DNA of 64,000 nt from Octopus sinensis (Eukaryota), in NCBI RefSeq assembly GCF_006345805.1, contig NW_021832606.1, positions 1 through 64,000 on the forward strand, read 5' to 3'. The notes beneath the pieces were generated by a model. It did not search any database, had not been told where the DNA came from, and was given only the letters and a program-made list of their open reading frames with translations. The translations under genes were made by a program, and so were the position numbers. Below are positions 7,308-62,750 of the stretch, piece after piece (position 1 is the stretch's first letter; each line of letters opens with the position of its first letter).

Positions 7308-8930
7308 GTTTTATACGTAAATCACATAGCTGATCCCTAAGAAGGACGTGTGTGACTCCCCCAAGGATTTGAGGCCAATCTATGCCGAATTTATATAAGT
7401 TGACAACGAAATGTGTAAACATAAAGTTGTCAGAGTATATTGATGCTTTCGGATAAGTGACAATCAACTGGGCACAAGAAGAATGTGCAAAAGAACAAGC
7501 CATAATCAATCAGATCATGTTTTCTTAGACTATTTGTTACAAAAGTCTGGACTTGCTTATTGGATTGTCTGCTTTATTCAGAGTCTTATTAACAAATGGA
7601 AAATACGATTGACTTTTGAAAATAAATCATTGGGTCAAGTAAAAATAAGAAGAGGAATTTTGCAAGGAGACTTTGTCGCCACAGATCTTTGTGTTGGTAT
7701 TGGACCCTTTGAGTCGAATGTTAAATGGAAAATGCCCGAAAGTAACAATGGGGAATCGGATACCGATACTTAGGAGTTCTTGAAGATATGAACAGTAATG
7801 TCCTTAAAAAAGAAATTATGGGGAAAATTTATAATGAGGCATCCACTCGGATTAAGACGGAATTAAACTCTGTGAATTTATTTAAGGCGATAAACGAATT
7901 TTCACTCTCTCTATATAAATGATTGATATCGAGCCAGGGGAATTTGAACAAATTGACAAAAATGTCAGCAGAATTCTTACGGAGAGCCATATTCACATGC
8001 AACCGGCAAACAAAGAAAGACTATATTTACCAAGAAATAAACTTGGAAGAGGTCTCGAGTGTGTCAGTAACAAATCTGAACGAATGCTATTCCAATTTTA
8101 TCATGACTTGAAGCATAAAGCCGATTACTGCCTAAGAAGAGAGGGAATTCTACGGGTCGTCAATTCACAGAAAACTCACATGGCCACTATCGTAGAATTC
8201 ATATCCCGAAAGTACAATATCAAAAATATAAATGAACTGACAATAACTAAATTGGTGGAATTGAACATGAATATCTAATGAGGCAGATTGAAACTAAGCC
8301 ACTGCATTCTATTCTTTTCCAGTGTTTGAAGGACACTGAAGTTAATGAATCGCAGGATGGGTAGTTCATGGAAATAACTCGCCAATTAAGTTGTGGAAAT
8401 TCGAGTGGACAGAACTATTTCTACGGATACGGCTGTTTCAAACAATAAACCAGATATTTTTGTCCATGACAAGATGAGGAATACAATTACACTCATTGAA
8501 GTTGGGATTACCTCACAAAATTGCCTAAAGCAAGTTGAAGTGGAAAAGTTCCACAAATATGACCTTTGGCAAATGAATTAGGGGCGATTCATCGGGCTAG
8601 AGTGAAGATAATCCCTGTTGTACTTACTCGGGATGGAATTGTCTCAAAATTCTTCAAAAGTAATCTGGATTCTATCGCAGTGGAAGACAGAGTGAAGGCA
8701 TATATTCAAACACTCGTTTTAAGAAAAACATTGGAGAGTATGCAGGTGGAGACAAGACATGGAATATCGGTTCCCGGAGAGGAGCATGCAGTGATTGAAT
8801 GTCAACCGAAGGATTCTTCTCTACCAGGAATACGTGTACCGACTATGATAGTTGGGCATAAGAGACGAAGACTGTCCTAAATATAGATGCTTAAAAAAAT
8901 GCTATTATAAATTTTTATTACTCAATAAAA
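7308..8930 (+). mobile_element. Degraded 5'-truncated R4/Dong-like non-LTR retrotransposon (RT plus restriction-like endonuclease)
   Basis: LIPKKDVCDSPKDLRPI..PNLYKLTTKC, IRRGILQGD, RLYLPRNKLGRGL, NNKPDIFVHDK..ITLIEVGITSQ..EVEKFHKYDL, KIIPVVLTRDGIVSKF; many stops and frameshifts. Confidence 0.88.
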
Positions 8931-13637: not shown

Positions 13638-16600
13638 ATGGATAGACTGCTCTATGCAATTTCTCTCCTCAGAAACGAGGAGACCGACGAGGACATTGAT
13701 CCCCGTTTTTTCCGTCGTTCGCCCAATTCCTGGCACTCCTTCTCCACTCACCTGAGAATGTCCTCGTTATTCGACCGCACATTCCTGGAAAGGGCACTCA
13801 GGGACATACTCAATGTGGCACATCAAAGTTAGTTCAGTCATTTCAAATTAGTTTCCACCAACCAAGTCGAGCAAGTGGCACTATTTATTGCCCACAGTCT
13901 GTGGACCGTCGACTTTCTCTCTCCACAAGTTCTCCTCTCAATCAACCAGAATGAGTATATCCACCACGTCTCCGCCAAACAACTCGAATCTATTTTTAAG
14001 GACATCCAAGTCCTCAGAAAATGTCCACTTCCAGCCTCAAATGGACCGAATCCCACAAGTAAGGTCACTGACCAACCCAGTCGAGACCGGACTGAGGGAC
14101 CGCACCTTCCACGTGACCGACATTGGTCTCAGTTCGGAGTCGGAAGAGTCGGGGACGGAAAACTGCGGAAAAGGGTGGCTGAGGTCGTCGCTCGAGGAGT
14201 TCAAAAACGTCGACTTTTCCGCGGAGGAACTCCACGGTTTGGTGATTGGTATTCTCTCGTCGACGGAAAACGTGGAGGAAATACAAAATCACGTTTTTTG
14301 AGATATATTTTGGTAGTTGTTTGATCTGTTGGGGTTTGAGGGGTTTGATTTGATTGTGAGAATTATCTCAAATCGTGATTCTCTCGTCAGTCCCCCTGAA
14401 GCTGTTTCCAGAACTAAAAAAACCAAAAAACCCATCAAATCCCAGCCAAAAAACAAGCAAACTTGTTCGACCATTCCTTCACTCCTCGAAATCCGGTTTT
14501 CCTGTTTTGAATATTCCAGAAAGTACATTTCCCAGACAGGCCAGGTGTGTCTGCCGAATGTGTTCGATTCGAATGTCTACCAACAAAACGACCTCGTTTG
14601 TCCATGTGGTAAAACTGACAGAAACTGCCCGTTTCGTCAGTCCATCGAAACACTGAGAAATACGAACGTTTTGACGTGTTTCCCCCCGAATCAGCCGGGA
14701 AGGACCAATTTTCAATAACGAATGTTCCACGGCTGTTGATAGAGGACTTGGATGATGTATTGGACGAGTGTGACTCCCAGATGGTGCAGAGGGCATTCCA
14801 GGGAGTGCCAGCTCTCAACTGCATTCAGTCGACTGTCTTTGAGACTGTGATGAACAGTCAGGAGAATGTGCTCATTTCTGCCCCCACGGGAGCTGGAAAG
14901 ACCAACATTGCCCTGTTGGCCATCCTCAGTAGACTCAGGGATCACATAAATCACCGGAAACTGCCCATCGAGGATTTAAAAGTGGTCTACATCGCCCCAA
15001 TGAAGGCCTTGGCTTCCGAGATTACTGCCAAATTCGCAGATCGACTAACCCCGTTTGGATTGTCAGTCCGCGAGTTGACAGGAGACATGCAACTGACGAG
15101 GAAAGAAGTGTCTTTGACTCAGGTGTTGTCCAAATGTGGATATTCAGGTATTTGTGGTCACCCCGGAGAAACTGGACGTGGTGTCGCGGAAGGACGTGGA
15201 CATTGGAATGACGGACAGTCTCTCTATTCTCTCCAAAATGACTCTCCTTGTCATCGACGAACTTCAACTACTGGCGGACACTCGTGGATCAGTTTTGGAG
15301 ACACTCGTCGCCAGAATTCTACGACTGGTGGAGAGCAGTCAGCGTGTGATCAGGATTGTGGGACTGTCGGCCACTCTCCCCAACTATTTGGACATTGCTT
15401 CCTTTCTGCGAGTCAATTTTAGTAGTGGACTGTTCGTGTTTGATGGGAGGTTTCGTCCTGTGCCCCTCACGCAGTCCCTCGTGGGGGTCAAGACGCATTT
15501 TCCCCGAGAGACTGAGAAGAATATAAACCACATCTGTTTTAACGAAGTCACTCGTTTTGTGGGGGGAGGCCATCAGGTTGGGCAGTGGATATACCCAAGG
15601 TCATGGTTTTTGTCACTTCGAGGAACGGAACTGTCAAAACAGCCACCACTCTTCTGGAAATGGCCGAAACTGGAGGCCAGACTGGGCTGTTCGTTGTCCC
15701 TCCGTCTCCAGCACTTGCCCTGGCCATTAAACACGTAGAGGCTAATCTGGACTTGTTAGATGGACAAGTCTCGAATGAGTGAACTTGGTCGTCTGTTCCG
15801 AGCTGGGTTTGCAGTCCACCACGCGGGGATGAGTCGTTCTGACCGAAATGCAGTAGAAAAGTACTTTCGAGAAGGACTGGTGAAATGTCTCGTGTGCACT
15901 GCCACGTTAGCTTGGGGAGTCAATTTGCCTGCCCACGCTGTCATCATCAAGGTTGAGAGACCTGCCTTGAGTGGAAGGGAACTAACATTTATGACTCAAA
16001 GTCGAGTTCCTTTGTGGACATGAGTGTTCTGGATGTCCTGCAGATATTCGGGAGAGCAGGGAGGCCTCAGTACGACGAGTCCGGACAGGGGATACTCATC
16101 ACTGAACACTCCTCACTCTCCTCCTACCTGCAGGTGGTTGGGGCCAACTCCCCCATCGAAAGTCGTTTCCTCGAGACAATCGACGACAATTTGAACGCAG
16201 AAGTATTGAATGTGTCCAAAGGGGACTAGATTGTGTTGGGGACAGTCACCAATGTCAGTGAAGCCATTCAGTGGCTTAAATACAGCTATTTCTACGTCCG
16301 TCTTCTGGCCAATCCCACCGTCTATGGAGCTTCCTATGCCCAGTTGCTGGTTGTCTCCTGTCCTCAACTCAGATGGACAACACACTGTCGGACCACTGCA
16401 GACAAATCATCACCAAGGCAGGACACTCTCTGGACGGAGCTCAAATGATTCGATTCGACGAGGTGCACTCTTATTTCTTTTCGACTGATTTGGGGCGGAC
16501 TGCCTCCCATCTGTACATCAGCACTGCCACTATTCGAGTAGAGTTGGCAGTTCAGTGTAGATCATCAATGACACTTTTAATGACAAGGTCGACCAGAAGG

Positions 16601-19600
16601 GGGTTCTTTCCGTCATTGCCTCAGCCACGGAGTTTGACCAGATCAAAGTGAGGGTTGAGGAGTGCGACGAACTGGAAATGTTGGAAAAGTGTTGTCCCTA
16701 CGCTCTCTCCACATCCGCCCTGTCCAAGGAGGGGAAGGTCAACCTGTTGTTGCAGGCCTACATCTGCCAATTTGACCTCAGGACATCTTCTCTCCTTTCA
16801 GACCAACAGTATTGTGTGCAGGTATTGACAGTGGTCGACCTGGAAGAACGCCAGTCGACTAGCCCGGGCACTCTTCGAAGTTGCCGACCGAAATGGTTGG
16901 GCCAACTGTTCGTGGATTGTCCTCTCGTTCGGACAGTGTCTGGATCGAAGGCAGTGGACATTTGAATCCCCTTTGAAACAATTCGACGAGTTGTCCTCCA
17001 CTGTTTTGGGACACATAAGGCGGACCAGACTCGACTATGACCGAATTGAGAGCATGGAAGCAAAGGAGATAGGTTGGGTGGTGTATTGAGGACAGGCGTG
17101 GTCGTGCATAATGTCGACTGTGGTCGGGTAGTCAAACAACTCAACTCGTCATTGCCCATGGTTGAGGTGGAGGCGACAATCCAGCCAATCACCCACACAA
17201 TTCTTCGCATCCGAGTGGACGTCACTCCTTCTTTCCGGTGGAACGACAAGGTGAGTATTCTCCACATGTCCAGTTTCATGGAATAGAGTCGGCTTCCTCT
17301 GAGATATATCAGATTTGGGTGACCGACGTCGAGAGCGACCGTATTTACCACTCGGAGACACTCTGCATTAAAAAGAAGCAAGTCATTTCGAAGGAGGTCG
17401 TCCATTTGGTGTTGACTGTGCCCATATTCGAGCCAATTCCTCCGCAGTACTTTGTGCATGTCGTCTCCAATCGGTGGATTGGGGTGGCCACGACTTGTCC
17501 CGTCTCCTTCGACAAGCTGATTCTCCCAGACTCGTCGTATTCCCACACGGAGTTACTCGACCTCCAGCCACTGCCTGTGACTGCCCTGGGAAATAAGGAA
17601 TTCGAGTCTCTGTACACGTTCAGTCACTACAACCCCATCCAAACACAGGTCTTCCACACAGTCTACCACACCGACCACAATGTGCTTTTGGGGGCACCCA
17701 CTGGCTCGGGGAAGACCAATGTGGCTGAAATGGCCATTTTACGTGTTTTCCGCAAATACCCTTCATGTCAGGTATTCCTTTCACTGTAATATAGTGCGTG
17801 TATATTGCCCCTCTCAAAGCACTTGTCCGAGAGAGATTGGCTGACTGGAGTGGACGAATAGGCCAAAAATTGAACAAGAGGTGGTGATTAGACTGAACAT
17901 TGACAAGGGTGGTGGAATTGACGGGAGACACCAGTCCCGACGGGGATGTCCTGCGACGGGCCGACCTGATTGTGACGACGCCTGAGAAGTGGGACGGGAT
18001 TAGTCGTAGTTGGCAGTGTCGCAGTTATGTCCGGAATGTGGCACTCATTTGCATTGACGAAATACACCTGCTTGGTTGGCTTCTCTGTTTTCCTACTGAA
18101 GGGGAGGAGAGGGGACCAGTCCTCGAAGTCATTTTGTCCCGACTTAATTTTATTGCTCACGAAACACGTCAGAATGTGCGTGTTATTGGTCTGTCGACTG
18201 CCCTGGCTAATGCGATTGACATTGCCACTTGGCTGTCCATCCCCAAACAAGGATTGTTCAACTTCCGGCCTTCCGTCCGTCCAGTCCCCCTGGAAGCACA
18301 CATCTCCGGGTTCCCAGGGAAGCACTACTGTCCTCGCATGGCCTCGATGAACCGAGCCTGTTTCCGGGCCATCCAAGTGCACTCCCCCAACAAGCCTGTC
18401 CTCATTTTTGTGTCCTCTCGGAGACAGACTCGACTGACTGCGTTGGCCTTGGTCTCTCTTCTGGCCTCCGAGTCTGATAACCTTCGATCGTGGCTGCATA
18501 CGTCTGAATCGGAGGTTGTTGGGGAGTTTGTGAGTACTTAGATCGAGTCTCTCAAGGTGGAGGACGCCAACCTAAGTTTAACACTCCCCTTCGGAGTGGG
18601 AATCCACCACGCAGGGTTGGTCACCTCGGATAGGGAATTGACAGAAAGACTGTTTGTTAGTTCAAAAATCCAAGTTTGTGGGATGTTTGATTGGCAGATT
18701 CTCGTGTCGACAGCAACTCTGGCCTGGGGGGTCAACTTCCCGGCACACCTCGTCATTGTGAAGGGGACGGAATACTTTGACGGGGCGACCAAGAAATATG
18801 TCGATTTCCCCGTGACGGACCTCCTCCAGATGATGGGGAGGGCAGGTCGTCCCCAGTTCGACCAGTGTGGAGTCGCCTGTATTTTCGTCCAAGATATCAA
18901 AAAGATTTTTTATAAAAAGTTTTTGTACGATCCTTTCCCGGTCGAGTCAAAGTACTCTTTTTTATGTCACAAAGTCTTTCCGCCGTTCTCCCCGAACATA
19001 TCAATGCAGAGGTCGTGGCAGGGACAGTTCGTAGTCTTCAAGAAGGAGTTGACTTTCTGACCTGGACGTACTTTTACCGTCGAATTCTGAGCAACCCAAA
19101 GTTGTTGTTCTTTGGCTATTCAAGTTATTATGATCTGAATTCGGTCGAGCCGGAGAACGTGAGTTCCCACTTGTCCCAACTGGTGGAGACGTCTGTGTCG
19201 ACTCTGTGTTGTCATCATTGCGTGGAAGTGGACGAGGAGGGAGGGTATTCCCCTCTCCCGGCGGGGTCGATCTGCTCGTTCTACTACCTGGACCACCGGA
19301 CGATGGGCATGTTCGTGGAGAATGTGGTGGAAGACATGTCCTTTGACTGTCTCATATACACTCTCTCGGTTGGCTTCTTTCACTCACACATAAAGATGGC
19401 CAAAGAGTTTGATGAGATTCCAGTGAGACATAACGAGGATAAACTCAATGCTGAGTTGGCCGGGGAGTTGTCGTTGAGTGTGAAAGACCCAGAATCCCCC
19501 AACACGAAGGCCTTTCTCCTCCTCCACGCCCATTTGACTCGACATTGCTTTTCCTGCGTGGATTACGTGACGGATTGCAGGACAGTGGTCGATCAGACTA

Positions 19601-20313
19601 TTCGAATTCTACAAGCTCTTATTGACTGGTCTGTCCACGAGGGGTACGTTCTAACCACCCTTCGTTCTATTCTTCTTATTCAGTTGATTGTCCAAGCACT
19701 GGTGCCATACGAGAGGAGTATTCTGAGTATTCCCAACATTGATCATTCGAATGTCGCCTTTTTCATGTTTGTCATTCCATTCATTACTTCTAGGCAGTGT
19801 TTCAAAGGAAGAACTGAACTGCCTATTCTGTTTGAGTGTTTAAAGACAGACCGACATCATTTTGTCGAGTTGGTGGGCAATTGTTTGTCTCAAAGCAAAT
19901 GTGTCAAGGCAATCGAGTTCATCGAGCGCCTCCCAATTGTGGAGACAATCATACGAGTGAATAACACTCCACTGATGGAGGGAGGAGTGTCTGTTGTACA
20001 TGGAGACGAGTGTGTTCTCCGTGTTAAACTTTATAACATTAACCGACTTGTATTTTCTGTCATATTGACTGTAGGTTCCTGGGTTGGAGATGTTTAGTCC
20101 TCGCATCGGTAAGCCAAAGAGTGGTGGCTGGTTTCTTTTATTAGTGGATGGAACGAGGGGGACTGTTCTCGATGTGTTAAACGGGAGAGGTATGTCAGTG
20201 AAACAGCCTCGGTTATGTTTACTGTCAAGAATAAGCATTCTGTCTTGTACGTATTGAGTGATACTTTTGTGGGGATTGACCAGCAGTATGATATATTCGT
20301 GGAGTATCACTAG
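13638..20313 (+). CDS. ASCC3: ASCC3 (Slh1/HELIC1) double-cassette Ski2-like helicase, many mini-introns
   Basis: Two helicase cassettes (APTGAGKT and APTGSGKT) with Sec63 domains. ASCC3-type strings: [52 protein letters not shown]; ends [18 protein letters not shown]. Confidence 0.93.
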
Positions 20314-27304: not shown

Positions 27305-27749
27305 ATCTCCAATGTCCACTTCAATTCATAGAACTAAAAAACGACGAAGAACTGAAAATAAAATTTAAAAATGAAAACCTGACACAATTCTGGGGATAAA
27401 AATCTATAAAAATGAAATTCTCGAAATTATGGGAAAAAATGATGCCAATAATATTATGTTTTCCTACGTCATACTGCGTAGAGAGAGGATTCAGCACTCT
27501 GAATAGTATGCTCGGAAAAAAAAGAAACAAACTAAATATAGAAGAAAGAGGCGACATTAGAATTACACTTACGAAAAGAAGTACAAATTTTAAAAAACTT
27601 GTCAATCTTCATCAACCACAAGGATCTCATTAAAACTCTTATTTTTTAAATAAAAATTTTTACTAATGAAATAAGGGGGCGATATAAAAATTGGAGGGGC
27701 GAAAAAAAATCCAAGGGGGCGATACAAAAATAAAGGTTGAGAACCACTG
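27305..27749 (+). mobile_element. hAT (Buster/Charlie) transposon 3' fragment with TIR
   Basis: Dimerisation domain FPTSYCVERGFSTL...KRNKLNIEERGDIRITLT..LHQPQGSH*; GGGGCGA subterminal repeats; ends GGTTGAGAACCACTG. Confidence 0.85.
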
Positions 27750-30680: not shown

Positions 30681-31179
30681 TCCTGACATTTAGTCGGCGA
30701 TAGGCGCTGGATCGCATCTTCTCGGAAGTTTTAAAATCCCGAGAAGAGGAGGAAATTGGTGTAGTTCGTTTGATCTCTACCGGATACCTCTTGAATGGCA
30801 AATCCGTCCGGATCGGGATTTTTGGATCTCAAAGGATTTTTGGATCTGCTTGTTGATGCGAGAAAGTTGTCGATTCTAAGTACGTGACTTTCTCTCTTGC
30901 AAATTATGTACGGGTAGATTCTCCATTCACCCAGGTTAGACTTCGCTCTTTTCAAACACCTTAATGTTGGGTGTATTTACGAATCGTATTTGAAATATAG
31001 TACATTTAATGAATAATCTGCAGGTACAAACTCGGAGAGGAAATAACGAATCATTTTCCAACATGGATGAGTGTGCCCATCGAAGAGATTGGCTTTGCCT
31101 GGAAAAAGAAGAGAATCAACTGAGAAAAGAAGCATTAATTAAAAATTAAACATTACTCGTTGTTCTGTTCAATAAATCA

Positions 31180-31325
31180 GATATTTCAAGTCGATCTAAT
31201 AATATTTTGTTTGAAAATCTAAATAAAAGTAATTTTGAAGTGATCAAAAAACTAGAAGAAATTTTTATGGAGTACGGCCCATGTAAATATTTGCAATCGG
31301 AGAACGGCACAGAGTTCAAGAACAT
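31180..31325 (+). mobile_element. Integrase (rve/Ginger-like DDE) core fragment
   Basis: FQVDLI and NKSNFEVIKKLEEIFMEYGPCKYLQSENGTEFKN resemble the integrase D...LQSDNGxEF region. Confidence 0.5.
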
Positions 31326-31703
31326 TTATATTACGTAAAAAAACATATAGAGAAAAAAATATACTTCCTACCTTCAATTGATGTCACAATTATCGAAGAA
31401 TGTCCGCCTAAAAAACATCCAGTTATTGAAACCCCACAATAAATGTCAGTTGATGGTATGTTTAAACGTTTATTTAACTTTTTAGGGGAGCAGATAGAGA
31501 TAAGTACAGCAGAGAAAAAAAATCAACAAATTGTGATCATCTTCTCATTTATAGACATTATTCCTTGCTACCTATTTTCTTTTGTGAATTCTGTCTTTTT
31601 CCATCTGCTGAATATTTCGAAATGATTGAATTTTATTTTGCCCTCAAAGTTTGAACTGCATCTGGTCTTGTCGTCCCGAGGAAATTCTGATCAAACAATA
31701 GTA

Positions 31704-32517
31704 CAGTGCTGGTGGAAAAAAACCGGTTTTGCAGTTACTAAGTTTTTTTGGCAGATAGCATTCAATTTTCCAACTGAATTGAACTCTTTGGAGTTTATTA
31801 GATTTATAATTTTTTTTGTTTATAAAAAATTTCATTAATCGTTTAAAATTTTGAAGATTTAAATTTTTGCGTGTGAATAAAAAACCGATTTGATTTATTG
31901 AATGATATTTTATTTGTTGAATTTTAAGTTTTATAAGCAAATGTTAAATGCAATAATTAAAGGAAAGATCCTTGCTCTTTTTGAGTTAAATTGGACGATA
32001 AAAGATATCGCAAAACATCTAAATACTTTAAAATCGACAATCAGAGATTTTTTCCGAAAATTCAAAAAATATGGAATTGCTGATAGGATTTCTGATTCCG
32101 GACGTCATAGAAAGCTTCAGAAAACAGACATTGAAATCCTATTACATCGATCCAAAAAAATCTTCTACCACGTTGAGAAATGAAATAAAACATTTAACTG
32201 GTAAGAGTGTCTGTAGAAAGACAATTGGAACTTATTTAAATTCAAATTTTCTCTTCGGAAGAGTATGTCAACGTAAACCGTTGCTTTCGAAGAAAAACAT
32301 AATAAAAAGATGTGAATTGTCAAAAATTTTTATTCGGATGAACAATGACGCATGGAAAACTATTATTTTCTCTGATGAAGCATCTTTTCAGATTTTTATA
32401 AACAAAAAAATTATAAATTTAATAAACTCCAAAGAGTTCAATTCAGTTGGAAAATTGAATGCTATCTGCCAAAAAAACTTAGTAACTGCAAAACCGGTTT
32501 TTTTTCCACCAGCACTG
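31704..32517 (+). mobile_element. Non-autonomous Tc1-like element with long near-perfect TIRs and TA TSD
   Basis: TA|CAGTGCTGGTGG...CCACCAGCACTG|TA, TIRs of about 125 bp; transposase N-half (HTH, GRHRKL, RKPLLSKKN, TIIFSDEASF) truncated after the first catalytic Asp. Confidence 0.93.
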
Positions 32518-33145
32518 TATTTCCAATGATATTCGAACGCTTTAAAGATTATTTTCATCATCTTTGGCTAAATCATTAATCTAAATTTAATAATCTTCTA
32601 ATTTTATGCATCCGTTGTTTGCAAACAATCGAAGTTATCATTAGTTAGTTAATAGCACTTCCGATTGTCATAAGCACATAAGTGTCTCATGCCGTACTCT
32701 CAACTATCATTCCGGTCAGTCTTTTCTAACCGGCCTTGTTACTCGCGCGTAGAACAAGCTATCATTTCGATTCGCGAAATCTTTCTATAAAAAGGCTATT
32801 TAAAAAAGCTACTAATTCCTTAAATGTCGGAGTCTTAATTTCAGACTCAGAACGTTATATGACATGTGGATATCTATTTCATTAATTGTAGCTGGGAATT
32901 CGTTAAGAATCTTTTATCAAAATCTTGAAAAATTTTAAATAATAGGTACTATTTTCACTGTTTCATGAAAAATAAATTAATTTTAGCTCATTAGATAAAG
33001 AGTCGCATTTTCTAATTTTATTTGATTTCCACATGCTGTAAATTTTGAAATGATGAATCGAAATTTCAGCTAAAAAATGATTTCTTGTTAATTGAACAGG
33101 AACAAATCAAATTTATTTTTATTCTGTTTAAATAAATGTGTCATT

Positions 33146-33264
33146 ATCGCACGATCATGCTTAGTCGTAAATACCCGTTCCCATCCGAACACGGCAGTTA
33201 AGCGATTACAGGCTGTTCTAGTACTTGGCTGGGTGACCGCCTGGGAACAAACAGTGTCGTACAA
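33146..33264 (+). rRNA. 5S: 5S rRNA gene, solitary
   Basis: About 119 nt with CCGAAC, GTTAAGC and TAGTACTTGGCTGGGTGACCGCCTGGGAAC conserved blocks; helices II-V pair; followed by TTTTT. Confidence 0.9.
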
Positions 33265-33269
33265 TTTTT
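33265..33269 (+). terminator. Pol III oligo-T terminator
   Basis: TTTTT immediately after the 5S 3' end. Confidence 0.75.
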
Positions 33270-38271: not shown

Positions 38272-39139
38272 CAGGCATTCTCAACCTTTTTTTGTTCATC
38301 GCCCCCTTAGATATTTTATCGCCCCCCTTTGAAATTTTATCGCCCCTTTGTCCATATACAATTTAAAAATTTTTGGGCATTGTCCCTTAATTGGTTGTTT
38401 TTTGTATATAACTCAAAAATCAAAATATAAAATAATAAATCAAATGTAAAAAATTGAATTTTTATTAAAAATTATTAGTGAGACTTTTGATATTGATGTT
38501 TACTCGCTAAATATTCTATGTCGGGTTTAAATCCCATTAAAACAGCTTTACTATCTACAATGACGCTTTCATCAATTTGTAATGAAAACTTACTTCGCTT
38601 CAGTCTTTCAATAAGGATTTCCTCTACATTGTCACCCATTTCATCAATACTTTGACGAATCACCTGAACGTGTTAGTTAATGATTAAGACGTTGTGCGCA
38701 CCCACAACTACATATAAATAAATGTTAAATAACCATCATGTACTGGCTTTGTGAATAACGATTTGATCGTTTTCTTATTTTCAAAATTGTATTTTAAATT
38801 TTGAAAATATTCAATCGGCTTTGACATTTTATCCGGGTGCTTGCGTTTTAGATGATCCTGTAATCGTGATGGCTTCATCGCCTCATTTGAGAAAGAACAT
38901 TGACAAATAAGACAATAAGGCTGTTTTGTATCTTCAGTACTTTGAATAAACCCATATTTTAAATATTCGTTTTGATAATGACGACTTTTCTTATTTGAGC
39001 GAAAAGACATCTTAGATACCAAACAAGAATGTAAAAACAGCGTGCTATTTTAAAATCGCCCCCTTGTAAAAAATTATCGCCCCCCTGTACAAAATTTTCG
39101 CCCCTAGGGGGGCGATTCGCCCCCGGTTGAGAACACCTG
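38272..39139 (-). mobile_element. Internally deleted hAT Buster element with TIRs and perfect 8-bp TSD
   Basis: TSD GTTTAGAC on both sides; TIRs CAGGCATTCTCAACC / GGTTGAGAACACCTG; ATCGCCCC subterminal repeats; BED finger (YLKYGF..PYCLIC..MKPSRLQDHLKRKH) and FSLQIDES joined directly to the C-terminus. Confidence 0.95.
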
Positions 39140-48759: not shown

Positions 48760-49240
48760 GTGGAGTTATCTAAAAGAAATGAACGAAGTATTGTTTATCT
48801 TTTTAAAACAACCAATCAAGTTAGATCGGATCTCAATTTGTCATCATCCGTTTCTGTGGATACGATAAAACGATGTTTAAGGTCGAATAATCTTCATGGT
48901 AGAATAATAGTAAAAAAACCGAAACTTTTAATAATAAATTTGATGTCAAGATTAGACTGGTGTTTTGAAAAACTTACATTGGGATTTGAAGAATAGAGTA
49001 ATGTATTTTTTTCTAATGAATGTCGATTATGTTATTCCAATTGTTGGAAGATGTTTAAAAGACCAGAAAAATGTAGAGAAAGAGAATAAAATAATTCATC
49101 CGAAAACTGTAAAGTTTCTCCGAATATCGTGGTATGGGGTTGCTATCACTGCAACTGGAAAAGAGCATTGGTTTTGTGTAGAAAAAATGTTTATTTCAAT
49201 AAATACCAAAGAATTCTAGAAGAAGGATTAGAAAATATTC
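48760..49240 (+). mobile_element. Degraded Tc1 transposase fragment (second family)
   Basis: VSVDTIKRCLRSNNLHGRIIVKKPKL, NVFFSNECR, HPKTVK, VVWGC, YQRILEEGL. Confidence 0.7.
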
Positions 49241-49319
49241 GAACAAATTGAAGGAAACGCAAAAAAGGTTTAACACCACAAAATATTAATGCAATTTGTT
49301 AACCGGTTGAAAAGTATTA

Positions 49320-52300
49320 TGTCACAGGGTGATCAGACCCCTATGGGCAACCTGGCCTTTACGTGTTTCCATGGCAACTACATAGCAAATTTACAAAAGG
49401 CCACTAAAATAAAGGCAATCGATCCGAACTAATGATTGAACTTTAAATTTTTGAGAAAATGATGTTTTATATTTGAACCATGCTTGCTTTAAAATAATAA
49501 AATTCTTTACAACATTAGCAATTATAACGTGAATATTTTTTATTTTTGATAATATAAATTGCAACTTAGCAATTATAATTTACATCAATTTTTTGCAAAG
49601 TTTGTAACAACTTTAACTCTAACCCAAACCCTAACGTTGGCAAGTGACAACATAAATATTCAAAATCTAACCTAACCTAATCCAAACCCTAACGTTGGCA
49701 AGTGACAACATAAATATTCAAAATCTAACCCTAACATTAATCCAAACCCTAACGTTGGCAAGTGACAACATAAATATTCAAAATCTAACCCTACATTAAT
49801 CCAAACCCTAACGTTGGCAAGTGACAACATAAATATTCAAAATCTAACCCTAACATTAATCCAAACCCTAACGTTGGCATGACAACATAAATATTCAATC
49901 TAACCCTAACCTTAACCAAACCCTAACGTTGGCAAGTGACAACATAAATATTCAAATCTAACCCTAACATTAATCCAAACCTAACGTTGGCAGTGACAAC
50001 ATAAATATTCAAAATCTAACCCTAACATTAATCCAAACCCTAACGTTGGCAAGTGACAACATAAATATTCAAAATCTAACCCTAAATTAATCCAAACCTA
50101 ACGTTGGCAAGTGACAACATAATATTCAAATCTAACCCTAACATTATCCAACCCTAACGTTGGCAAGTGACAACATAAATATTCAAAATCTAACCCTAAC
50201 CTTAATCCAACCCTAACGTTGGCAAGTGACAACATAAATATTCAAAATCTAACCCTAACATTAATCCAAACCCTAACGTTGGCAAGTGACAACATAAATA
50301 TTCAAAATCTAACCCTAACCTTAATCCAACCCTAACGTTGGCAAGTGACAACATAAATATTCAAATCTAACCCTAACCTTAATCCAAACCCTAACGTTGG
50401 CAAGTGACAACATAAATATTCAAAATCTAACCCTAACCTTAATCCAAACCCTAACGTGGCAAGTGACAACATAAATATTCAAAATCTAACCCTAACCTAA
50501 TCCACACCCTAACGTTGGCAAGTGACAACATAAATATTCAAAATCTAACCCTAACATAATCCAAACCTAACGTTGGCAAGTGACAACATAAATATTCAAA
50601 TCTAACCCTAACTTAATCCAAACCCTAACGTTGCAAGTGACACCATAAATATTCAAAATCTAACCCTAACATTAATCCAAACCCTAACGTTGGCAAGTGA
50701 CAACATAAATATTCAAAATCTAACCCTAACATTATCCAAACCTAACGTTGGCAAGTGACAACATAAATATTCAAAATCTAACCTAACATAACCAAACCCT
50801 AACGTTGGCAAGTGACAACATAAATATTCAAAATCTAACCTAACCTTAATCCAAACCCTAACGTTGGCAATGACAACATAAATATTCAAAATCTAACCCT
50901 AACATTAATCCAAACCCTAACGTTGGCAAGTGACACATAAATATTCAAAATCTAACCCTAACCTTAATCCAAACCCTAACGTGGCAAGTGACAACATAAT
51001 ATTCAAAATCTAACCCTAACATTAATCCAAACCCTAACGTTGGCAAGTGACAACATAAATATTCAAAATCTAACCCTAACCTTAATCCAAACCCTAACGT
51101 TGGCAAGTGACAACATAAATATTCAAAATCTAACCCTAACCTTAATCCAAACCCTAACGTTGGCAAGTGACAACATAAATATTCAAAATCTAACCCTAAC
51201 CTTAATCCAAACCCTAACGTTGGCAAGTGACAACATAAATATTCAAAATCTAACCCTAACCTTAATCCAAACCCTAACGTTGGCAAGTGACAACATAAAT
51301 TTCAAAATCTAACCCTAACCTTAATCCAAACCCTAACGTTGGCAAGTGACAACATAAATATTCAAAATCTAACCCTAACCTTATCCAAACCCTAACGTTG
51401 GCAATTGACAACATAATATTCAAATCTAACCCTAACATTAATCCAACCCTAACGTTGGCAAGTGACAACATAAATATTCAAAATCTAACCCTAACCTTAA
51501 TCCAAACCCTAACGTTGGCAAGTGACAACATAAATATTCAAAATCTAACCCTAACATTAATCCAAACCCTAACGTTGGCAAGTGACAACATAAATATTCA
51601 AAACTCTAACCCTAACCTTAATCCAAACCCTAACGTTGGCAAGTGACAACATAAATATTCAAAATCTAACCCTAACATTAATCCAAACCCTAACGTTGGC
51701 AAGTGACAACATAAATATTCAAAATCTAACCCTAACCTTAATCCAAACCCTAACGTTGGCAAGTGACAACATAAATATTCAAAATCTACCTAACCTTAAT
51801 CCAAACCCTAACGTTGGCAAGTGACAACATAAATATTCAATCTAACCCTAACATTAATCCAAACCCTAACGTTGGCAAGTGACAACATAAATATTCAAAA
51901 TCTAACCCTAACATTAATCCAAACCCTAACGTGGCAAGTGACAACAAAATATTCAAAATCTAACCCTAACATAATCCAAACCCTAACGTTGGCAAGTGAC
52001 AACATAAATATCAAATCTAACCCTAACATTAATCCAAACCCTAACGTTGGCAAGTGACAACATAAATATTCAAAATCTAACCCTGACCTTAACCCAAACC
52101 CTAACTCGAATTAAATGATGTTTCTGCTGACGATTCTTCAGACATTTTTTACAAAAATTGGAAGCCTTTTTGGCCACCGGTGTTTGCTTCGAGCATTCAT
52201 ATCCTCCGGGAATATCCCGATTAACGCTTCCTTAATTTGATTGTATTCGTTATATATTTCTGACGTAACCCTTAAACCCAGACATCACAAAGTGTGAGTA

Positions 52301-52516
52301 ACCACGCTGTTAAAATTAATATACTTTTGGTAAGCCATTTTAAAAGATATTCAAATGTAATTTTAATTAGAATAATTGATTTTTTTTTTTTTTTTTTGAT
52401 TAATCTACACTCTTCCATATATAAATTGCTATATTCAATATTTAATACCTTTTTCTGCGTTTCCATAGAAACGTAAAAGGACTGGCTGCCCTAGCGACAT
52501 AGTCGCCCATGTGACA
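49320..52516 (-). mobile_element. Non-autonomous Ginger-like DNA element carrying a satellite array
   Basis: TATTA|TGTCACA...TGTGACA|TATTA; about 60-bp imperfect TIRs; transposase-like N-terminal remnant on minus at about 52150..52330. Confidence 0.75.
49612..52105 (+). repeat. 60-bp tandem satellite, about 42 copies, half telomere-like
   Basis: Unit TAACGTTGGCAAGTGACAACATAAATATTCAAAATCTAACCCTAAC(A/C)TTAATCCAAACCC; exact 60-bp period over 51001..51300. Confidence 0.98.
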
Positions 52517-52766
52517 TATTATCCCCGAGTTACTCGTGGTGAGGACCTTTATGATTTTTTAATTTAACAAATAATATTTGTTCTGTTTCCCATAGCATGA
52601 TTACAATTAGTATATACAATATTTTGATAAAATGCAAGCTTGAATTTCAAAATTGTACATTTGAAATTTTCAATTGCAATTAGAGATTTTAATTATAAAT
52701 TTGAAATTTATAATTGACAAATTGACTCGAAAATGGTATAGACACGCACGTTTATATACTTACTTA

Positions 52767-53235
52767 CAGTGCTGGTGGAAAAAAACCGGTTTTGAAGTTA
52801 CTAACTTTTTTGGCGGATAGCATTTATTTTTTAACTGAATTGAACTCTTTGTAGTTGATTAGATTTATAATTTTTTTTGTTTATACAAAATTTCATCAAT
52901 CGTTCAAAATTTTGAAGATTTAAATTTTTGCTTGTGAATAAAAAACCGGTTTGATTTATTGAGTGATATTTTATTTGCTGAATTTTAAGTTTTATAAGCA
53001 AATGTTAAATGCAATAATTAAAGGAAAGATCCTTGCTCTTTTTGAGTTAAATTGGGCGATAAACGATATCGCAAAACATCTAAATACTCCAAAATCGACA
53101 ATCGGAAATTTTTTTCGAAAATTCAAAAAATATGAAACTGCTGATAGGATTTCTGATTTCGGACGTCATAAAAAGCTTCAGAAAACAGACATTGAAATCC
53201 TATTACATCTTATTGAGTGCGATCCAAAAAAATCT
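52767..53235 (+). mobile_element. 5' half of the same Tc1 family as 31704..32517
   Basis: TA|CAGTGCTGGTGG TIR and a near-identical MLNAIIKGKILALFELNW...DPKKS frame; stops abruptly at a hAT fragment. Confidence 0.9.
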
Positions 53236-53750
53236 AGTAATGATTCAATTCCCCACAGGATTGACAAAATGTTAGAAAATTAACATATTTTATGAAAAAG
53301 GCTTAAAAATACTATTTTTTGCTTCAAATCGACAAAAGTCATATATGTGACAACCGACCAATTCTAATAAAATATGTCAGGTTAGTATTATTAAAAGCTA
53401 ACTTTTTAAGATATTTTGACGATCATGTTTTTCTTACAGAAGATTTATTATTTGTCAAATATTTGGAAATTGGTATATTTTTACGTAATCAAATGATTTT
53501 TGGATGACAAAAAGATTCTATTTTGAAATTTGGTTTCTTGCGCCACAAATGATGCAATGTCTATGGTTGGGAAGTATTAAAGATTTGCAGCACAATTGAA
53601 AAAATTGTTCAAATGTGATTCATATGGATTGGATTCTACATAGACATTATTTGGTTTCAAAAGCTTTTTCGTCAATTCTACATGAAAAGTGAATTATAAT
53701 CATTAAAATCATCAACAAAATTAAAGCAAACAGCAATTAGAAAATTTTGC
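53236..53750 (+). mobile_element. hAT Buster transposase internal fragment containing a putative mini-intron
   Basis: SNDSIPHRIDKM, LQIDKS..ILIKYVR|YFD..EDLLFVKYLE, CATNDAMSMVGKY. The 3' end is approximate. Confidence 0.65.
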
Positions 53751-55517: not shown

Positions 55518-55930
55518 TCATCCCTTCCGTCGTCTTGCCCTCTTTCTGATTTCGTCCAGATCGTCTGCATCCTTCAATCGGCTTCCGATCGTAGCATATT
55601 CCTTTGTAAGTATTCCCGGAAGACAGTCTATTGGACGTCCTCTATATTTAGAGTATTCAGTATGGCCGAAAAATTCTTCCATGGCCATATTGCAAGGTGT
55701 TTCTTTCTTCATTCGTAAAATATGTCCAAACAGACGCCAGCGGGTTTCAAGTATATTTAGACTTATAGGCCCACAATTAGCTAATCTGTATAATTTATCA
55801 TTTGATATTTTCTTCGGCCACGAATAGCCGAGGAGTTTTCTCAGTTGACCCCTGTGGAAAGAGTCAAGTTGCTCCATGTTTTTCTTTGATGTTCCCCAAG
55901 TACCTGCGTTGTACATGAGGACATGTTCCT
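55518..55930 (-). mobile_element. RTE-like non-LTR retrotransposon 3' fragment
   Basis: YNAGTW...LDSFHRGQLRKLLGYSWPKKISNDKLY...RWRLFGHILRM...RGRP, the post-RT domain of RTE-type LINEs. Confidence 0.8.
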
Positions 55931-57599: not shown

Positions 57600-59342
57600 C
57601 TATCCCTTAATAACTGCAACGGGACACAACTTGACACACTTATTGCTGATTTTAGCCGCATGACACGTGTCGACGACAGCTGACACATCCTTATATGACT
57701 CGGGGGCCTCCTCCATCACCAGCTTGGGAGAGGCAACACGGACGGCTATCCCCTTCCGCCTCATCGCCTCCAAAACGTCCTCAAACGCCAAACACCTCCT
57801 GGCCTTGGAGCGGGAGAGAGCCCTGCCCTGCACACTCACACACAAGGCAGACCGCCCCGTGACATGTCGTCCCAAATGTCTCCTCAAACCCCGTGTCCGT
57901 GCCCGTGAGGACATAACTGCATGTCCCCATCGTCCCCCCTATCAGAATGGGCTGGCCAGTCAGCTGATAGTCCACGGGGATGAGAGGGTGGTGTGGCGGG
58001 AATGCCCTCGTCGACCCCTTCCGATGGACCAACAACTCCATTTGTTTGCCCTCAACCACATGTTCTTCCAACTTGGCAATATTGTGGGACACATCGTACA
58101 CCACGTGCATATCCAAATCATCCGCGGTGGTCGAAAATACTTTAGAAAATGCCTCCGACTAGTCCACCACCACAACCTGTCTGGCCAGGAATGTCATGGT
58201 CGACCGATTGACCCAGGCATAGTTGGCAGCCCCCGCCATGGCCTTCAAATAGTCCTGTCCTTCCGACGAGTGGATTCTCGCACACGCCAACTGTCGGTCA
58301 TTCACCTGAATATTGTCCCGCCGCATTGACTTGTCCATCTCCACCAGGGCGTCTACAGTCAGTGGAGGACACACCTGTGGCCACTTGGTGACCCAATCCT
58401 CGACTCCCACTGTGAATCATCACACAGATCTGCCCCACTCGCCCAATCCCCATCTTCGAGGCACTCCACTTGTCGTATATCTCCTCCACACACTGAATCT
58501 CCGCGTAGTGATTCCCAGCCCCCAATGTCCCCAACTGAGGCAGTCCCCTCTTCTTTGCCTTCGAACTGACCTTTCCCGGGTCTGCCTGCAACATCCGCCC
58601 ACTTTCCTCGCAATGTTCCTTGTCCTCTGCCCACGAATAGCCTTGTCGGACACTCCAATCCATCCCCATCAGCAGAGAATCCTCCAAATCTCTGGGATTA
58701 ACCAGAATGGCACTTTGGAGTCATTGGGACAATTCCACGTGACCCCACCCCCACTGGGATGTGGTCGAACAGTGCTTGGGCCAGTTGTTCCTTCACTGGT
58801 TCCACGTCCTCCACGCTCAGATTGGTTCGTATTAGCCGAATTCCGCAGTTTATGTCGAAACCAACTCCGCCGGGAGAAACGACTGCTTTTTCGTCTTTCA
58901 CGTCGAAGGCTGCCGTGTTTCCTAGTGGGTTATTTGTTTTTTAAACCAATTGCAAATCCATATCCGGAATGGACGTCTGGGAGTCCTATTGACCTCTAAA
59001 ATAATAATGCCCCACATCGAACAAAATAATTTAAATATTTATTAAATTAATTTTTGTATAAAATAAATAACTTACCCCTACAATTCCTGGAAGGGATGCG
59101 ACATTGGCTATTTGCTTGATGGAAGGCAGGAACCCCCCGACTCCTTCGTACTGGCAGAAATGTCTCAATTCTGACAAAACCAACTCTTCGAGTGATTTGT
59201 TGACGTAGAGGAGACCTTCCACCTATTTGTGAAGGGGGTTAATAACATTCATGTTGGGCTGCATTCCTTTCAATATACGCCAGGAATAATTGTTCTTCTT
59301 TTCTAGATATTTAAGTTCTTCCTCGTATGTGCGCACAACCAT
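57600..59342 (-). CDS. RTCB: tRNA-splicing ligase RtcB (eukaryotic RTCB/HSPC117), multi-exon
   Basis: [111 protein letters not shown]. Confidence 0.97.
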
Positions 59343-60041
59343 CAAGACCACGACATTTTATTATAAATAAATATTTTCATTTTAATTAAATGAAAAAATA
59401 ATTTTCAATATCTACAGGTTTTGAAATTTCCACCAAATACTTTTCCACGTTTATTTGAAGTTCTGTTTTTATTTGAAATTCGTTTATTTGAACCACTCAA
59501 TGTTAGAACTTTTGGTAGAACAATGAGTAATGGAGTATATTGTTGAAACAAAACAATCCCAATTAAATCATATGTGACATTCGTTACGCATGGGCTACAT
59601 TTTTTGACCTTATAGATTCAAAATCTGATTACCACAAATATTATTTTTATATACCAATTCAATATGGCGTCGTTGAGTTGACTCTGACTACTCTCTCTTA
59701 CCTACCCTATCTGGCATCTAACCTTAGTCTTAAATTCCATATAACGCCAGGAATCAAAAATGGCGGATTCGAGAGAGTTTACTTCAACTATTTTTTGTAT
59801 TGATTTAAATTATTTTTGTTCATGTACTTCAATAATATAAAAAGTTGCTTTTAACGTTGGTGAACCTAAACCGATTGCAAAAATTTTTAGCATTCTACAT
59901 TTGATTCGCGTAATGGTTTTTTAGAGCAGTCTTTCTCAACACTTTTTTAATTGTGACTCCCAAAATGCTCCAAAAAAATTACAGAGACCCCCTATATCAA
60001 TTTTATCTTAATCAAGAATTGAATCAAATCTAATAATTATA

Positions 60042-60492
60042 GGGTTTTCGGATCAATATAATAATTTTTCGAACCAATATAATAACTTTTCGAATCATAT
60101 AAAAATTTTTCGAACCAATATAATAATTTTTCGAATCAATATAATAATTTTTCGAATCAATATAATAATTTTTCAAATCAATATAATAATTTTTCGAATC
60201 AATATAATAATTTTTAAATTCAAAGAAATTCAAAGAAAAAAAGATCAAAAAGAGTAAATTATCGTTATTCTTGAATCACTTCAGAATTTGAGCATCTATT
60301 CAAATACGTTAACATCTTTCTGTAGAAGGATCCGCAATGTTCACTTGTTAAGCTTTATCATTATGCAAAGCTTCCAGATTTCTAAAATTTGTTGCATATT
60401 GTCTTCTGCTTTCTATAGTTGAAACTGAGTTTCTTCTTGGTTCGAACAATTATTATATGATTCGAAAAATTATTATATTGATCCGAAAACCC
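60042..60492. mobile_element. Nested foldback-like element whose TIRs are built from 21-bp repeats
   Basis: TA|GGGTTTTCGGATCAATATAATAATTTTTCGAA...TTCGAAAAATTATTATATTGATCCGAAAACCC|TA; 8 units in the left arm and about 2-3 in the right. Confidence 0.75.
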
Positions 60493-60966
60493 TATAATTA
60501 AGCTGCCTAATGGACTTTTGTTTTTGCATTTTAGAGATTAAAATATTAATGTTCGGTTTTGTCTCAGATAGGCATACGCAAATCATCTACTTTAAGACGG
60601 TTTCGATACTTTGACTTTTATTATGCAAGATGTGACATTGGCATTTTTCACATTTTATAACTTCTCTGATGCTATTGAACTGAGTAGTGGATATACAGTT
60701 CTTAGTTTTTAAACGATGTCAATGCACTTTGGGAACTTTTTAATTCAAAAAGGGATTCTTGAGTTTTGAGATTGTCATCCACATTTATGGGAGAAAGGAA
60801 GAGATTTACAATCCAATCAGGAACAGAATTTTGTACAGGAAAATAATTTTCAAATTTTTCAACAAGATTTGCATGATGTTCATCAATAATTTCCAATAAA
60901 GAATTATCGGATCTGTATTTTTATAAAAAGTTTCAGCACGAGGATACATTGATATATTTAATTTCA

Positions 60967-62299: not shown

Positions 62300-62750
62300 C
62301 TTCACAGGATCGGCTCAAGCAGAGGGAAGTTGAAAAGTATCACAAGTATGATCTACTGGCAAGTGAGCTTTCGCTTCTGTATAGTTGTAAGTTAAAATAA
62401 TTCCTGTGGTTATGAGATGGGATGAAGTTGTCTCGAAATGCTTCAAAAATTATATGAAGAAACTATCTATTGGAGCAGGAACGAGGACATACATCCAATC
62501 CGTTGTACTGAAAAGAACGCTCGAGAGTATGATGATCGAACACAAGCACGGAATGAAGGTATCTGGTGAAGAATACGCTTTTGTTCCAACCGGCTTGTGG
62601 AGATGGCATGCAAAAATGAAGACAACCTAATGAATGCTAAAGAAGATGCAATGGTTAAATCAGATGTGGTAATGGGGAGTAAGAGACAGCTGGAAATAGG
62701 CTCTTCTTCCAAGAGAAGGAGAGTGGATATCAGCAAGCTGGAGTGAGATC
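62300..62750 (+). mobile_element. R4-like retrotransposon 3' fragment
   Basis: LKQREVEKYHKYDLLASEL, IIPVVMRWDEVVSKCF, TYIQSVVLKRTLESM; same family type as 7308..8930. Confidence 0.8.

Follow-up and report, generated by a model that had tools for sequence, protein, structure and literature searches.

A 60-bp satellite with a telomere-like tract inside a candidate non-autonomous DNA transposon

Structure of the satellite-bearing unit

The DNA under study is a 64-kb stretch of contig NW_021832606.1 (positions 1 to 64,000, hereafter the window), in which a large tandem satellite array lies wholly inside a 3197-bp unit (positions 49320-52516) that has inverted ends and stands between two copies of a short direct repeat. 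We read this arrangement as a non-autonomous cut-and-paste DNA transposon with a mobiliser of the integrase type and an internally expanded satellite, and give this statement as a whole a probability of about 0.55. Both junctions were read directly, and the unit was found to begin with TGTCACA (49320-49326) and to end with TGTGACA (52510-52516), with an identical TATTA immediately outside each end, as had been claimed in the initial annotation of this DNA. At the local base composition, the two 5-bp flanks would be identical by chance with a probability of ~0.002, and with a probability of ~0.004 if the TA alone is taken as given. The insertion site has the context ...AAAAG[TATTA]TCCCC..., and the joined flanks, with a single TATTA, give ...TTGAAAAGTATTATCCCCGAGTTAC... 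as the predicted sequence of the empty site. Target site duplications (TSDs) of 4, 6, 8 or 9 bp were rejected, as the flanks are then not identical, and termini of the Transib or hAT style, starting with CAC or CAG, were also rejected, as the flanks then become inverted instead of direct.

When aligned in inverted orientation, the 59 and 58 nt arms of the terminal inverted repeats (TIRs) were identical in 44 of 61 columns (72%), with four gaps. Behind a perfect 7-mer at the terminus comes a diverged stretch, and beyond it a conserved inner block (30 of 39 positions identical over nt 21-59), which is found at the same offset from the terminus in both arms. The claim that the satellite sits between inverted repeats of ~60 bp therefore stands, and the similarity of the two arms is beyond what chance would provide, as set out below.

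As the initial annotation had been free to choose any positions near the array, we performed a null test of the whole procedure. The minimal configuration tested was an exact 6-mer inverted repeat paired with a direct repeat no shorter than 4 bp, located <=440 bp to either side of an array-sized gap. This minimal configuration was common, being present at 219 of 450 control loci taken from real window sequence (49%) and in 75% of Markov simulations, and on its own it is worthless as evidence. When the extended inverted-repeat score also had to reach 30, no control locus (0 of 450, with a maximum score of 27) and 5 of 4000 Markov simulations displayed the configuration; the full combination of TIRs and TSD is expected by chance about once in 1000. 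In addition, an inner block as good as that observed was attained by 0.02% of random 60-mer pairs (p ~2e-4), and the two TIR arms were reciprocal best non-self matches over the whole window on both strands (128 kb of strand), with a score of 30 against 25 for the next best. We conclude from these results that both the TIRs and the duplication of 5 bp are genuine and belong to an insertion.

We also determined that the element is non-coding. The initial annotation had recognized, on the minus strand near the right TIR, a remnant resembling the N-terminus of a Ginger/GIN1 transposase. This peptide, EYNQIKEALIGIFPEDMNARSKHRW, is derived from a 48-codon open stretch (52141-52284), which is unremarkable in AT-rich DNA, and it had no Pfam match at E<=10 and no match at E<=1e-3 in an exhaustive HMMER scan of 1.84 billion representative proteins. 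We have accordingly rejected the Ginger/GIN1 identification, and the supposed remnant is no evidence for any superfamily. Both backbone segments, translated in six frames with stops masked, matched no Pfam family, and the element matched no RNA family in Rfam at a permissive threshold (E<=1). The integrase-like protein sequence by which Ginger1/GIN1 elements are recognized (YPYY, H2C2, DDE and GPY/F) was likewise not found. The features of the element are collected in Table 1. It is present once in the window, within which we found no second copy, no empty site and no autonomous partner.

Table 1. Features of the satellite-bearing element and its junctions, in window coordinates
Feature	Position	Strand	Basis
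Left TSD copy, TATTA	49315-49319		Direct reading
Left TIR, 59 nt, starting TGTCACAGGG, with inner block CTATGGGCAACCTGGCCTTTACGTGTTTCCATGGCAAC	49320-49378	+	Alignment and null tests
Left non-repetitive backbone, AT-rich, non-coding	49379-49619		No Pfam match in any frame; single copy in window
Satellite array, 60 bp x 42.3 copies	49620-52105	+	Tandem Repeats Finder
Right non-repetitive backbone, with T18 run at 52380-52397	52106-52458		No Pfam, Rfam or protein match
Right TIR, 58 nt, reverse complement starting TGTCACATGGG	52459-52516	-	Alignment
Right TSD copy, TATTA	52517-52521		Direct reading

The satellite and its telomere-like tract

The array, which is the dominant one of the window, was resolved by Tandem Repeats Finder with a period of 60 and 94% matches, and splitting it at a fixed anchor gave 41 complete units with a partial unit at either edge. 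The satellite unit has the sequence CTAACGTTGGCAAGTGACAACATAAATATTCAAAATCTAACCCTAACMTTAATCCAAACC and is present as two variants, AACATTAAT and AACCTTAAT, with the contexts ...CTAACATTAATCC... and ...CTAACCTTAATCC.... Nearly all of the remaining differences between units are deletions of one base from a homopolymer run (AAAA to AAA, CCC to CC and TT to T), and one stretch of the array (51034-51273) is free of errors. These deletions look like uncorrected long-read consensus noise and not like divergence, so that both the copy number and the exact length of the array may be approximate. The units at both edges carry AACCCAAACC where the interior units have AATCCAAACC, a difference that fits in-place homogenization of the interior units. 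A segment to the left of the array (49511-49619) resembles two decayed monomers; this resemblance is weak, as its score of 46, above the maximum of 43 in the null set, was also reached by DNA outside the element.

Each 60-nt unit consists of a 29-nt degenerate (CCCTAA)n-like tract, CTAACCCTAACMTTAATCCAAACCCTAAC, in which 26 or 25 of the 29 positions match (CCCTAA)n, and of 31 nt that are unrelated. On its plus strand the array contains 75 CCCTAA hexamers, and on its minus strand none, compared with 15 on both strands together in the remaining 61.5 kb of the window. The hexamers are isolated within the 60-bp unit, and the perfect tandem dimer CCCTAACCCTAA was not found anywhere in the array. 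Because 29 of 60 nt are telomere-like and no perfect dimer is present, the array is a satellite with a short decayed telomere-like tract in each unit and not a telomere-repeat array; the earlier description of a 'telomere-repeat satellite' was overstated. The protein search found no homologue of an open frame encoded by the satellite, and a 16-mer of the satellite, taken on either strand, was not found in the literature searched.

Telomere proteins of the Myb type bind sequences with a core such as TAGGGTT. Two such cores are present per unit and, if the telomeres of the host are TTAGGG, would be putative telomere-protein sites, for which GTTAGGGTTTGG and GGTTAGGGTTAG are the candidate binding sequences. 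The array is similar to interstitial telomeric sequences and to subtelomeric telomere-associated satellites in that it has degenerate TTAGGG-type hexamers in one orientation, lies away from a chromosome end and has genes on both sides. It differs from both in that it has no tandem perfect hexamers and in that the 29 nt of the tract form a constant portion of a 60-bp unit, which has been amplified whole; neither telomerase addition nor chromosome fusion gave rise to this tract.

Genomic surroundings

The element is located between genes, in a transposon-rich intergenic stretch with a GC content of 30%. On the left it is flanked by the decayed remnant of a Tc1-like transposase (HTH_Tnp_Tc3_2), and on the right a further Tc1-like copy starts after 250 bp. 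The Tc1-like family to which these belong, with TIRs starting CAGTGCTGGTGGAAAAAAACCGG, occupies sites at 31702-32519, 52765-53300 and 48760-48996 (the left-flank remnant), and its members include a short internally deleted copy with TIRs of ~125 bp and, just right of the element, a second copy of which the 5' part is present. The TIR of this neighbouring family was not found in the literature searched, and among its copies in the window there was no paralogous empty site spanning the junction. We also searched metagenome, viral and prokaryote genome collections, among which the host genome is not included, for exact patterns of the satellite core and the TIR cores and obtained 0 matches.

Other repeats of the window were noted in their own right. 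A foldback element, or one similar to MITEs (miniature inverted-repeat transposable elements), is present at ~60037-60497 and is ~460 bp long, with arms formed by TTATAGGGTTTTCGGATCAATATAATAAT... and its reverse complement. Each arm is a tandem array of a 21-bp unit, which is repeated 8.2 times in the left arm and 2.6 times in the right, and the window thus offers a second example of an inverted-repeat element that contains tandem repeats. Tandem arrays with a period of 20-21 bp at 27669-27733 (minus strand), 38298-38346 (plus strand) and 39055-39116 share the motif ATCGCCCCCCTT, which has 8 sites against 0.5 expected and is found in opposite orientations ~11 kb apart. These arrays adjoin pieces of open reading frames (ORFs) that appear hAT/Buster-like by eye, on which Pfam was silent, and may represent the subterminal repeats of DNA transposons of large size. 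Fragments of ORFs that by eye resemble the C-terminal part of non-LTR (long terminal repeat) reverse transcriptases are present at 7919-8877 (plus strand), 55518-55916 (minus strand) and 62391-62627 (plus strand); Pfam was silent on the pieces tested, and on this visual reading they add to the nested transposon debris around the site. A 62-codon open stretch on the plus strand (31150-31335), with the end ...FEVIKKLEEIFMEYGPCKYLQSENGTEFKN (...YGPCKYLQSENGTEFKN), had no Pfam match at E<=10. We take it, as an unconfirmed likeness, to resemble the region of the third acidic residue in retroviral-type integrases; we found no link between this stretch and the element, and it was not used as evidence.

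The genes of the window include one for an ASCC3/Brr2-like helicase with Sec63 domains (13900-20100, plus strand), which has very short introns and an exon whose best protein match is 43% identical, and one for an RtcB RNA ligase (57700-59000, minus strand), also with very short introns, an exon of which is ~80% identical, as counted from the alignment, to a PDB chain of a eukaryotic RtcB homologue. A lone full-length 5S rRNA gene (33147-33265, plus strand; 95.6 bits) stands in transposon-rich DNA and is not part of a tandem 5S cluster. For a 506-aa ORF of the window, no homologue was found in the protein collection at E<=1e-10. These protein comparisons suggest a eukaryotic host, probably an animal, that lacks close relatives in the collections searched.

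Classification, rival explanations and significance

Given its TIRs and duplicated flanks, the site is very probably the insertion of a TIR element, and from its structure we infer the transposition itself, the type of transposase, and how and when the array expanded. A cut-and-paste DNA transposon with a backbone of ~0.7 kb (0.71 kb) would have entered the AT-rich, transposon-rich intergenic DNA and duplicated 5 bp on insertion. As the element encodes nothing, its mobilization, if any, would have taken place in trans, by a transposase recognizing the TIRs. In the eukaryotic TIR elements described so far, a staggered cut of 4-5 bp together with TGT...ACA ends is the signature of integrase-type DDE transposases, so that the mobiliser would most likely be a DDE transposase of the retroviral-integrase type (Ginger2/TDD). 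An internal segment with a short decayed telomere-like tract would have expanded into the 60-bp array through slippage or unequal exchange, the route seen in other MITEs that contain tandem repeats.

The Ginger2 elements have TGTNR ends, TIRs of 50-180 bp and AT-rich targets (PMC2836005), and the TSDs of Ginger2/TDD elements are 4 or 5 bp in length (PMC10045372). The present element has TGTCA...TGACA in accordance with the pattern TGTNR...YNACA, its TIRs fall within the range of ~50-180 bp and its TATTA duplication is within the range of '4 or 5 bp', although the last is a single instance that differs from the TSD of every animal family. On the basis of the TGT/ACA ends, the TIR length and the short AT-rich duplication, an assignment to Ginger2/TDD is plausible, and we make it tentatively, at somewhat less than even odds. 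The known members, i.e. the Ginger2_NA MITEs of Bombyx and Rhodnius and TDD-4/5 of Dictyostelium, share with it the form of the ends, the size of the TIRs and a short TSD in an AT-rich target. The defining property of Ginger2/TDD is linkage to an integrase-like transposase with an H2C2 zinc finger and a DDE domain; unlike in those elements, no such transposase was seen with the present one, which is known from one window. Membership of Ginger1 is ruled out, as the flanks are TATTA and the TSD of Ginger1 is the 4-bp CCGG or CCGT (PMC2836005). The TSD of LTR elements is 3-6 bp (PMC10045372), and that of Polinton elements is 6 bp. The initial interpretation is thus supported in part: the unit is a non-coding element with TIRs and a TSD that encloses the whole satellite, and its Ginger type is plausible, although not as Ginger1.

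Several observations weigh against this interpretation. In animals the Ginger2 TSD is 4 bp, typically TATA in the context RTATAY, and 5 bp is known only from TDD-4/5 of Dictyostelium (PMC2836005); the Ginger2-derived MITEs of Bombyx and Rhodnius, which are 0.5-0.65 kb in length and have the TIR TGTTACGGTAAAAGTA, also have the 4-bp TATA (PMC3845634). The TATTA of the present element therefore departs from all animal Ginger2 elements and their MITEs, its target GTATTATC fits the RTATAY preference in part only, and beyond TGT there is no similarity between its TIR and that published for the Ginger2 MITE. The TIR arms are only 72% identical, and the element is known from one copy. In AT-rich DNA, the duplication may also be a TA dinucleotide extended by three fortuitous matches, and the array may either have been present at insertion or have grown afterwards.

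If TGT/ACA is coincidental, the element could belong to another or undescribed TIR superfamily, or it could be of the Tc1/mariner type with a TA duplication that looks like TATTA, a family of alternatives which we regard as unlikely but worth taking seriously. The assignment hangs on 3-5 terminal bases and on the one TSD of one copy, in a lineage that is poorly sampled (the best protein match being 43% identical); moreover, both flanks begin or end with TA and Tc1-like elements are abundant around the site. However, of the superfamilies described, Ginger2/TDD is the only one in which TGT ends and TIRs occur with a TSD of 5 bp, apart from IS481EU, which shows this in parabasalids only (PMC2836005, PMC10045372). 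The Tc1-like family of the window starts with CAGTGCTGG and not with TGT, and all 5 bp of the flanks match, for which the chance given TA is the ~0.004 noted above.

The ends of the element also invite comparison with those of retroelements. LTRs have short inverted repeats of the form TGTTRNR...YNYAACA, of which ~7 bp are conserved, and their U3 region often holds tandem repeats (PMC3601003). The element could therefore be a solo LTR or LTR fragment of a Gypsy- or BEL-like element, with repeats expanded in U3, TGT...ACA as the sites of the integrase and a TSD made by the integrase of the retroelement. The perfect inverted repeat of the present element is exactly 7 bp long, as at LTR ends, and the tolerance of U3 for tandem repeats would accommodate the array (PMC3601003); the 5-bp TSD lies within the LTR range of 3-6 bp (PMC10045372), and a 0.7-kb backbone is a plausible length for an LTR. 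In contrast with the solo LTRs of Gypsy and BEL, however, the inverted similarity reaches ~59 nt, and the inner block at matched offset is not predicted by LTR biology; nor did the window contain a direct-repeat partner, gag-pol sequence or other retroelement interior, or a second copy. This origin appears improbable to us, and much the same applies to the absence of any mobile element, in which case the satellite would have grown in place and the inverted ends and TATTA would result from coincidence, local rearrangement or misassembly. The frequency of minimal configurations in control loci and simulations, the many 1-bp deletions in the array, which are typical of a noisy long-read consensus, and the single copy would all be compatible with growth in place, but the full configuration was absent from the 450 control loci and present in 0.1% of simulations, and the arms were reciprocal best matches over 128 kb of strand, which makes this last alternative quite improbable.

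As a cut-and-paste transposon with an internally expanded satellite, the element would not stand alone, as non-autonomous TIR elements with satellite-forming internal repeats are already well documented. In bivalves, DTC84 is a MITE whose internal repeats expand into satellite (PMC3879986), miDNA4 and Xstir of Xenopus are MITEs with internal repeats that have grown into satellites (PMC12628747), and Tetris of Drosophila virilis appears to be a tandem-repeat-bearing element of the same kind (PMC4079207). The present element is non-coding and has TIRs, a TSD and an internal array, as tandem-repeat-containing MITEs do, and its total of 3.2 kb exceeds the usual size of a MITE, the backbone accounting for 0.71 kb. 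Together with DTC84, pearl (also of bivalves), miDNA4, Xstir and Tetris, it has a short non-coding backbone, inverted ends, a TSD and a variable tandem array able to become a satellite. The known elements, however, belong to the pearl-like (AA TSD), Tc1/mariner and foldback groups and usually have 1-5 repeats in the mobile form, whereas in the present element TGT/ACA ends and a TSD of 5 bp go with 42 units (2.5 kb), of which each is half telomere-like. Our literature search, which was not exhaustive, found no description of satellite cargo in Ginger2 elements, and it may be new for ends of the integrase type to occur together with a TSD of 5 bp in what is probably an animal and with a unit that is half telomere-like.

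Being one well-formed insertion among the many transposons of an intergenic region, the element is useful to repeat annotation and would be unsurprising to a specialist; it would gain greater weight only if a genome-wide family that spreads 60-bp arrays exists. Dispersal of arrays by this element, of which one copy is available, is hypothetical, as are the roles suggested in the initial annotation, namely the seeding of interstitial telomeric sites, the recruitment of proteins, breakage and DNA elimination. The strongest form of this proposal is an animal non-autonomous family of the Ginger2/TDD type, with a 5-bp TSD and a mobile telomere-like 60-bp satellite as cargo, seeding TAGGGTT-type arrays to which telomere-repeat proteins could bind or at which breakage or healing could take place, and this we consider very improbable. 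If the host telomeres are TTAGGG, the ~75 CCCTAA hexamers in 2.5 kb would provide a putative internal site for telomere proteins. If other copies exist, the element would join the DNA transposons within which a satellite has arisen, and which may also have spread it, and might be the first of these that is of the integrase type (Ginger2/TDD-like).

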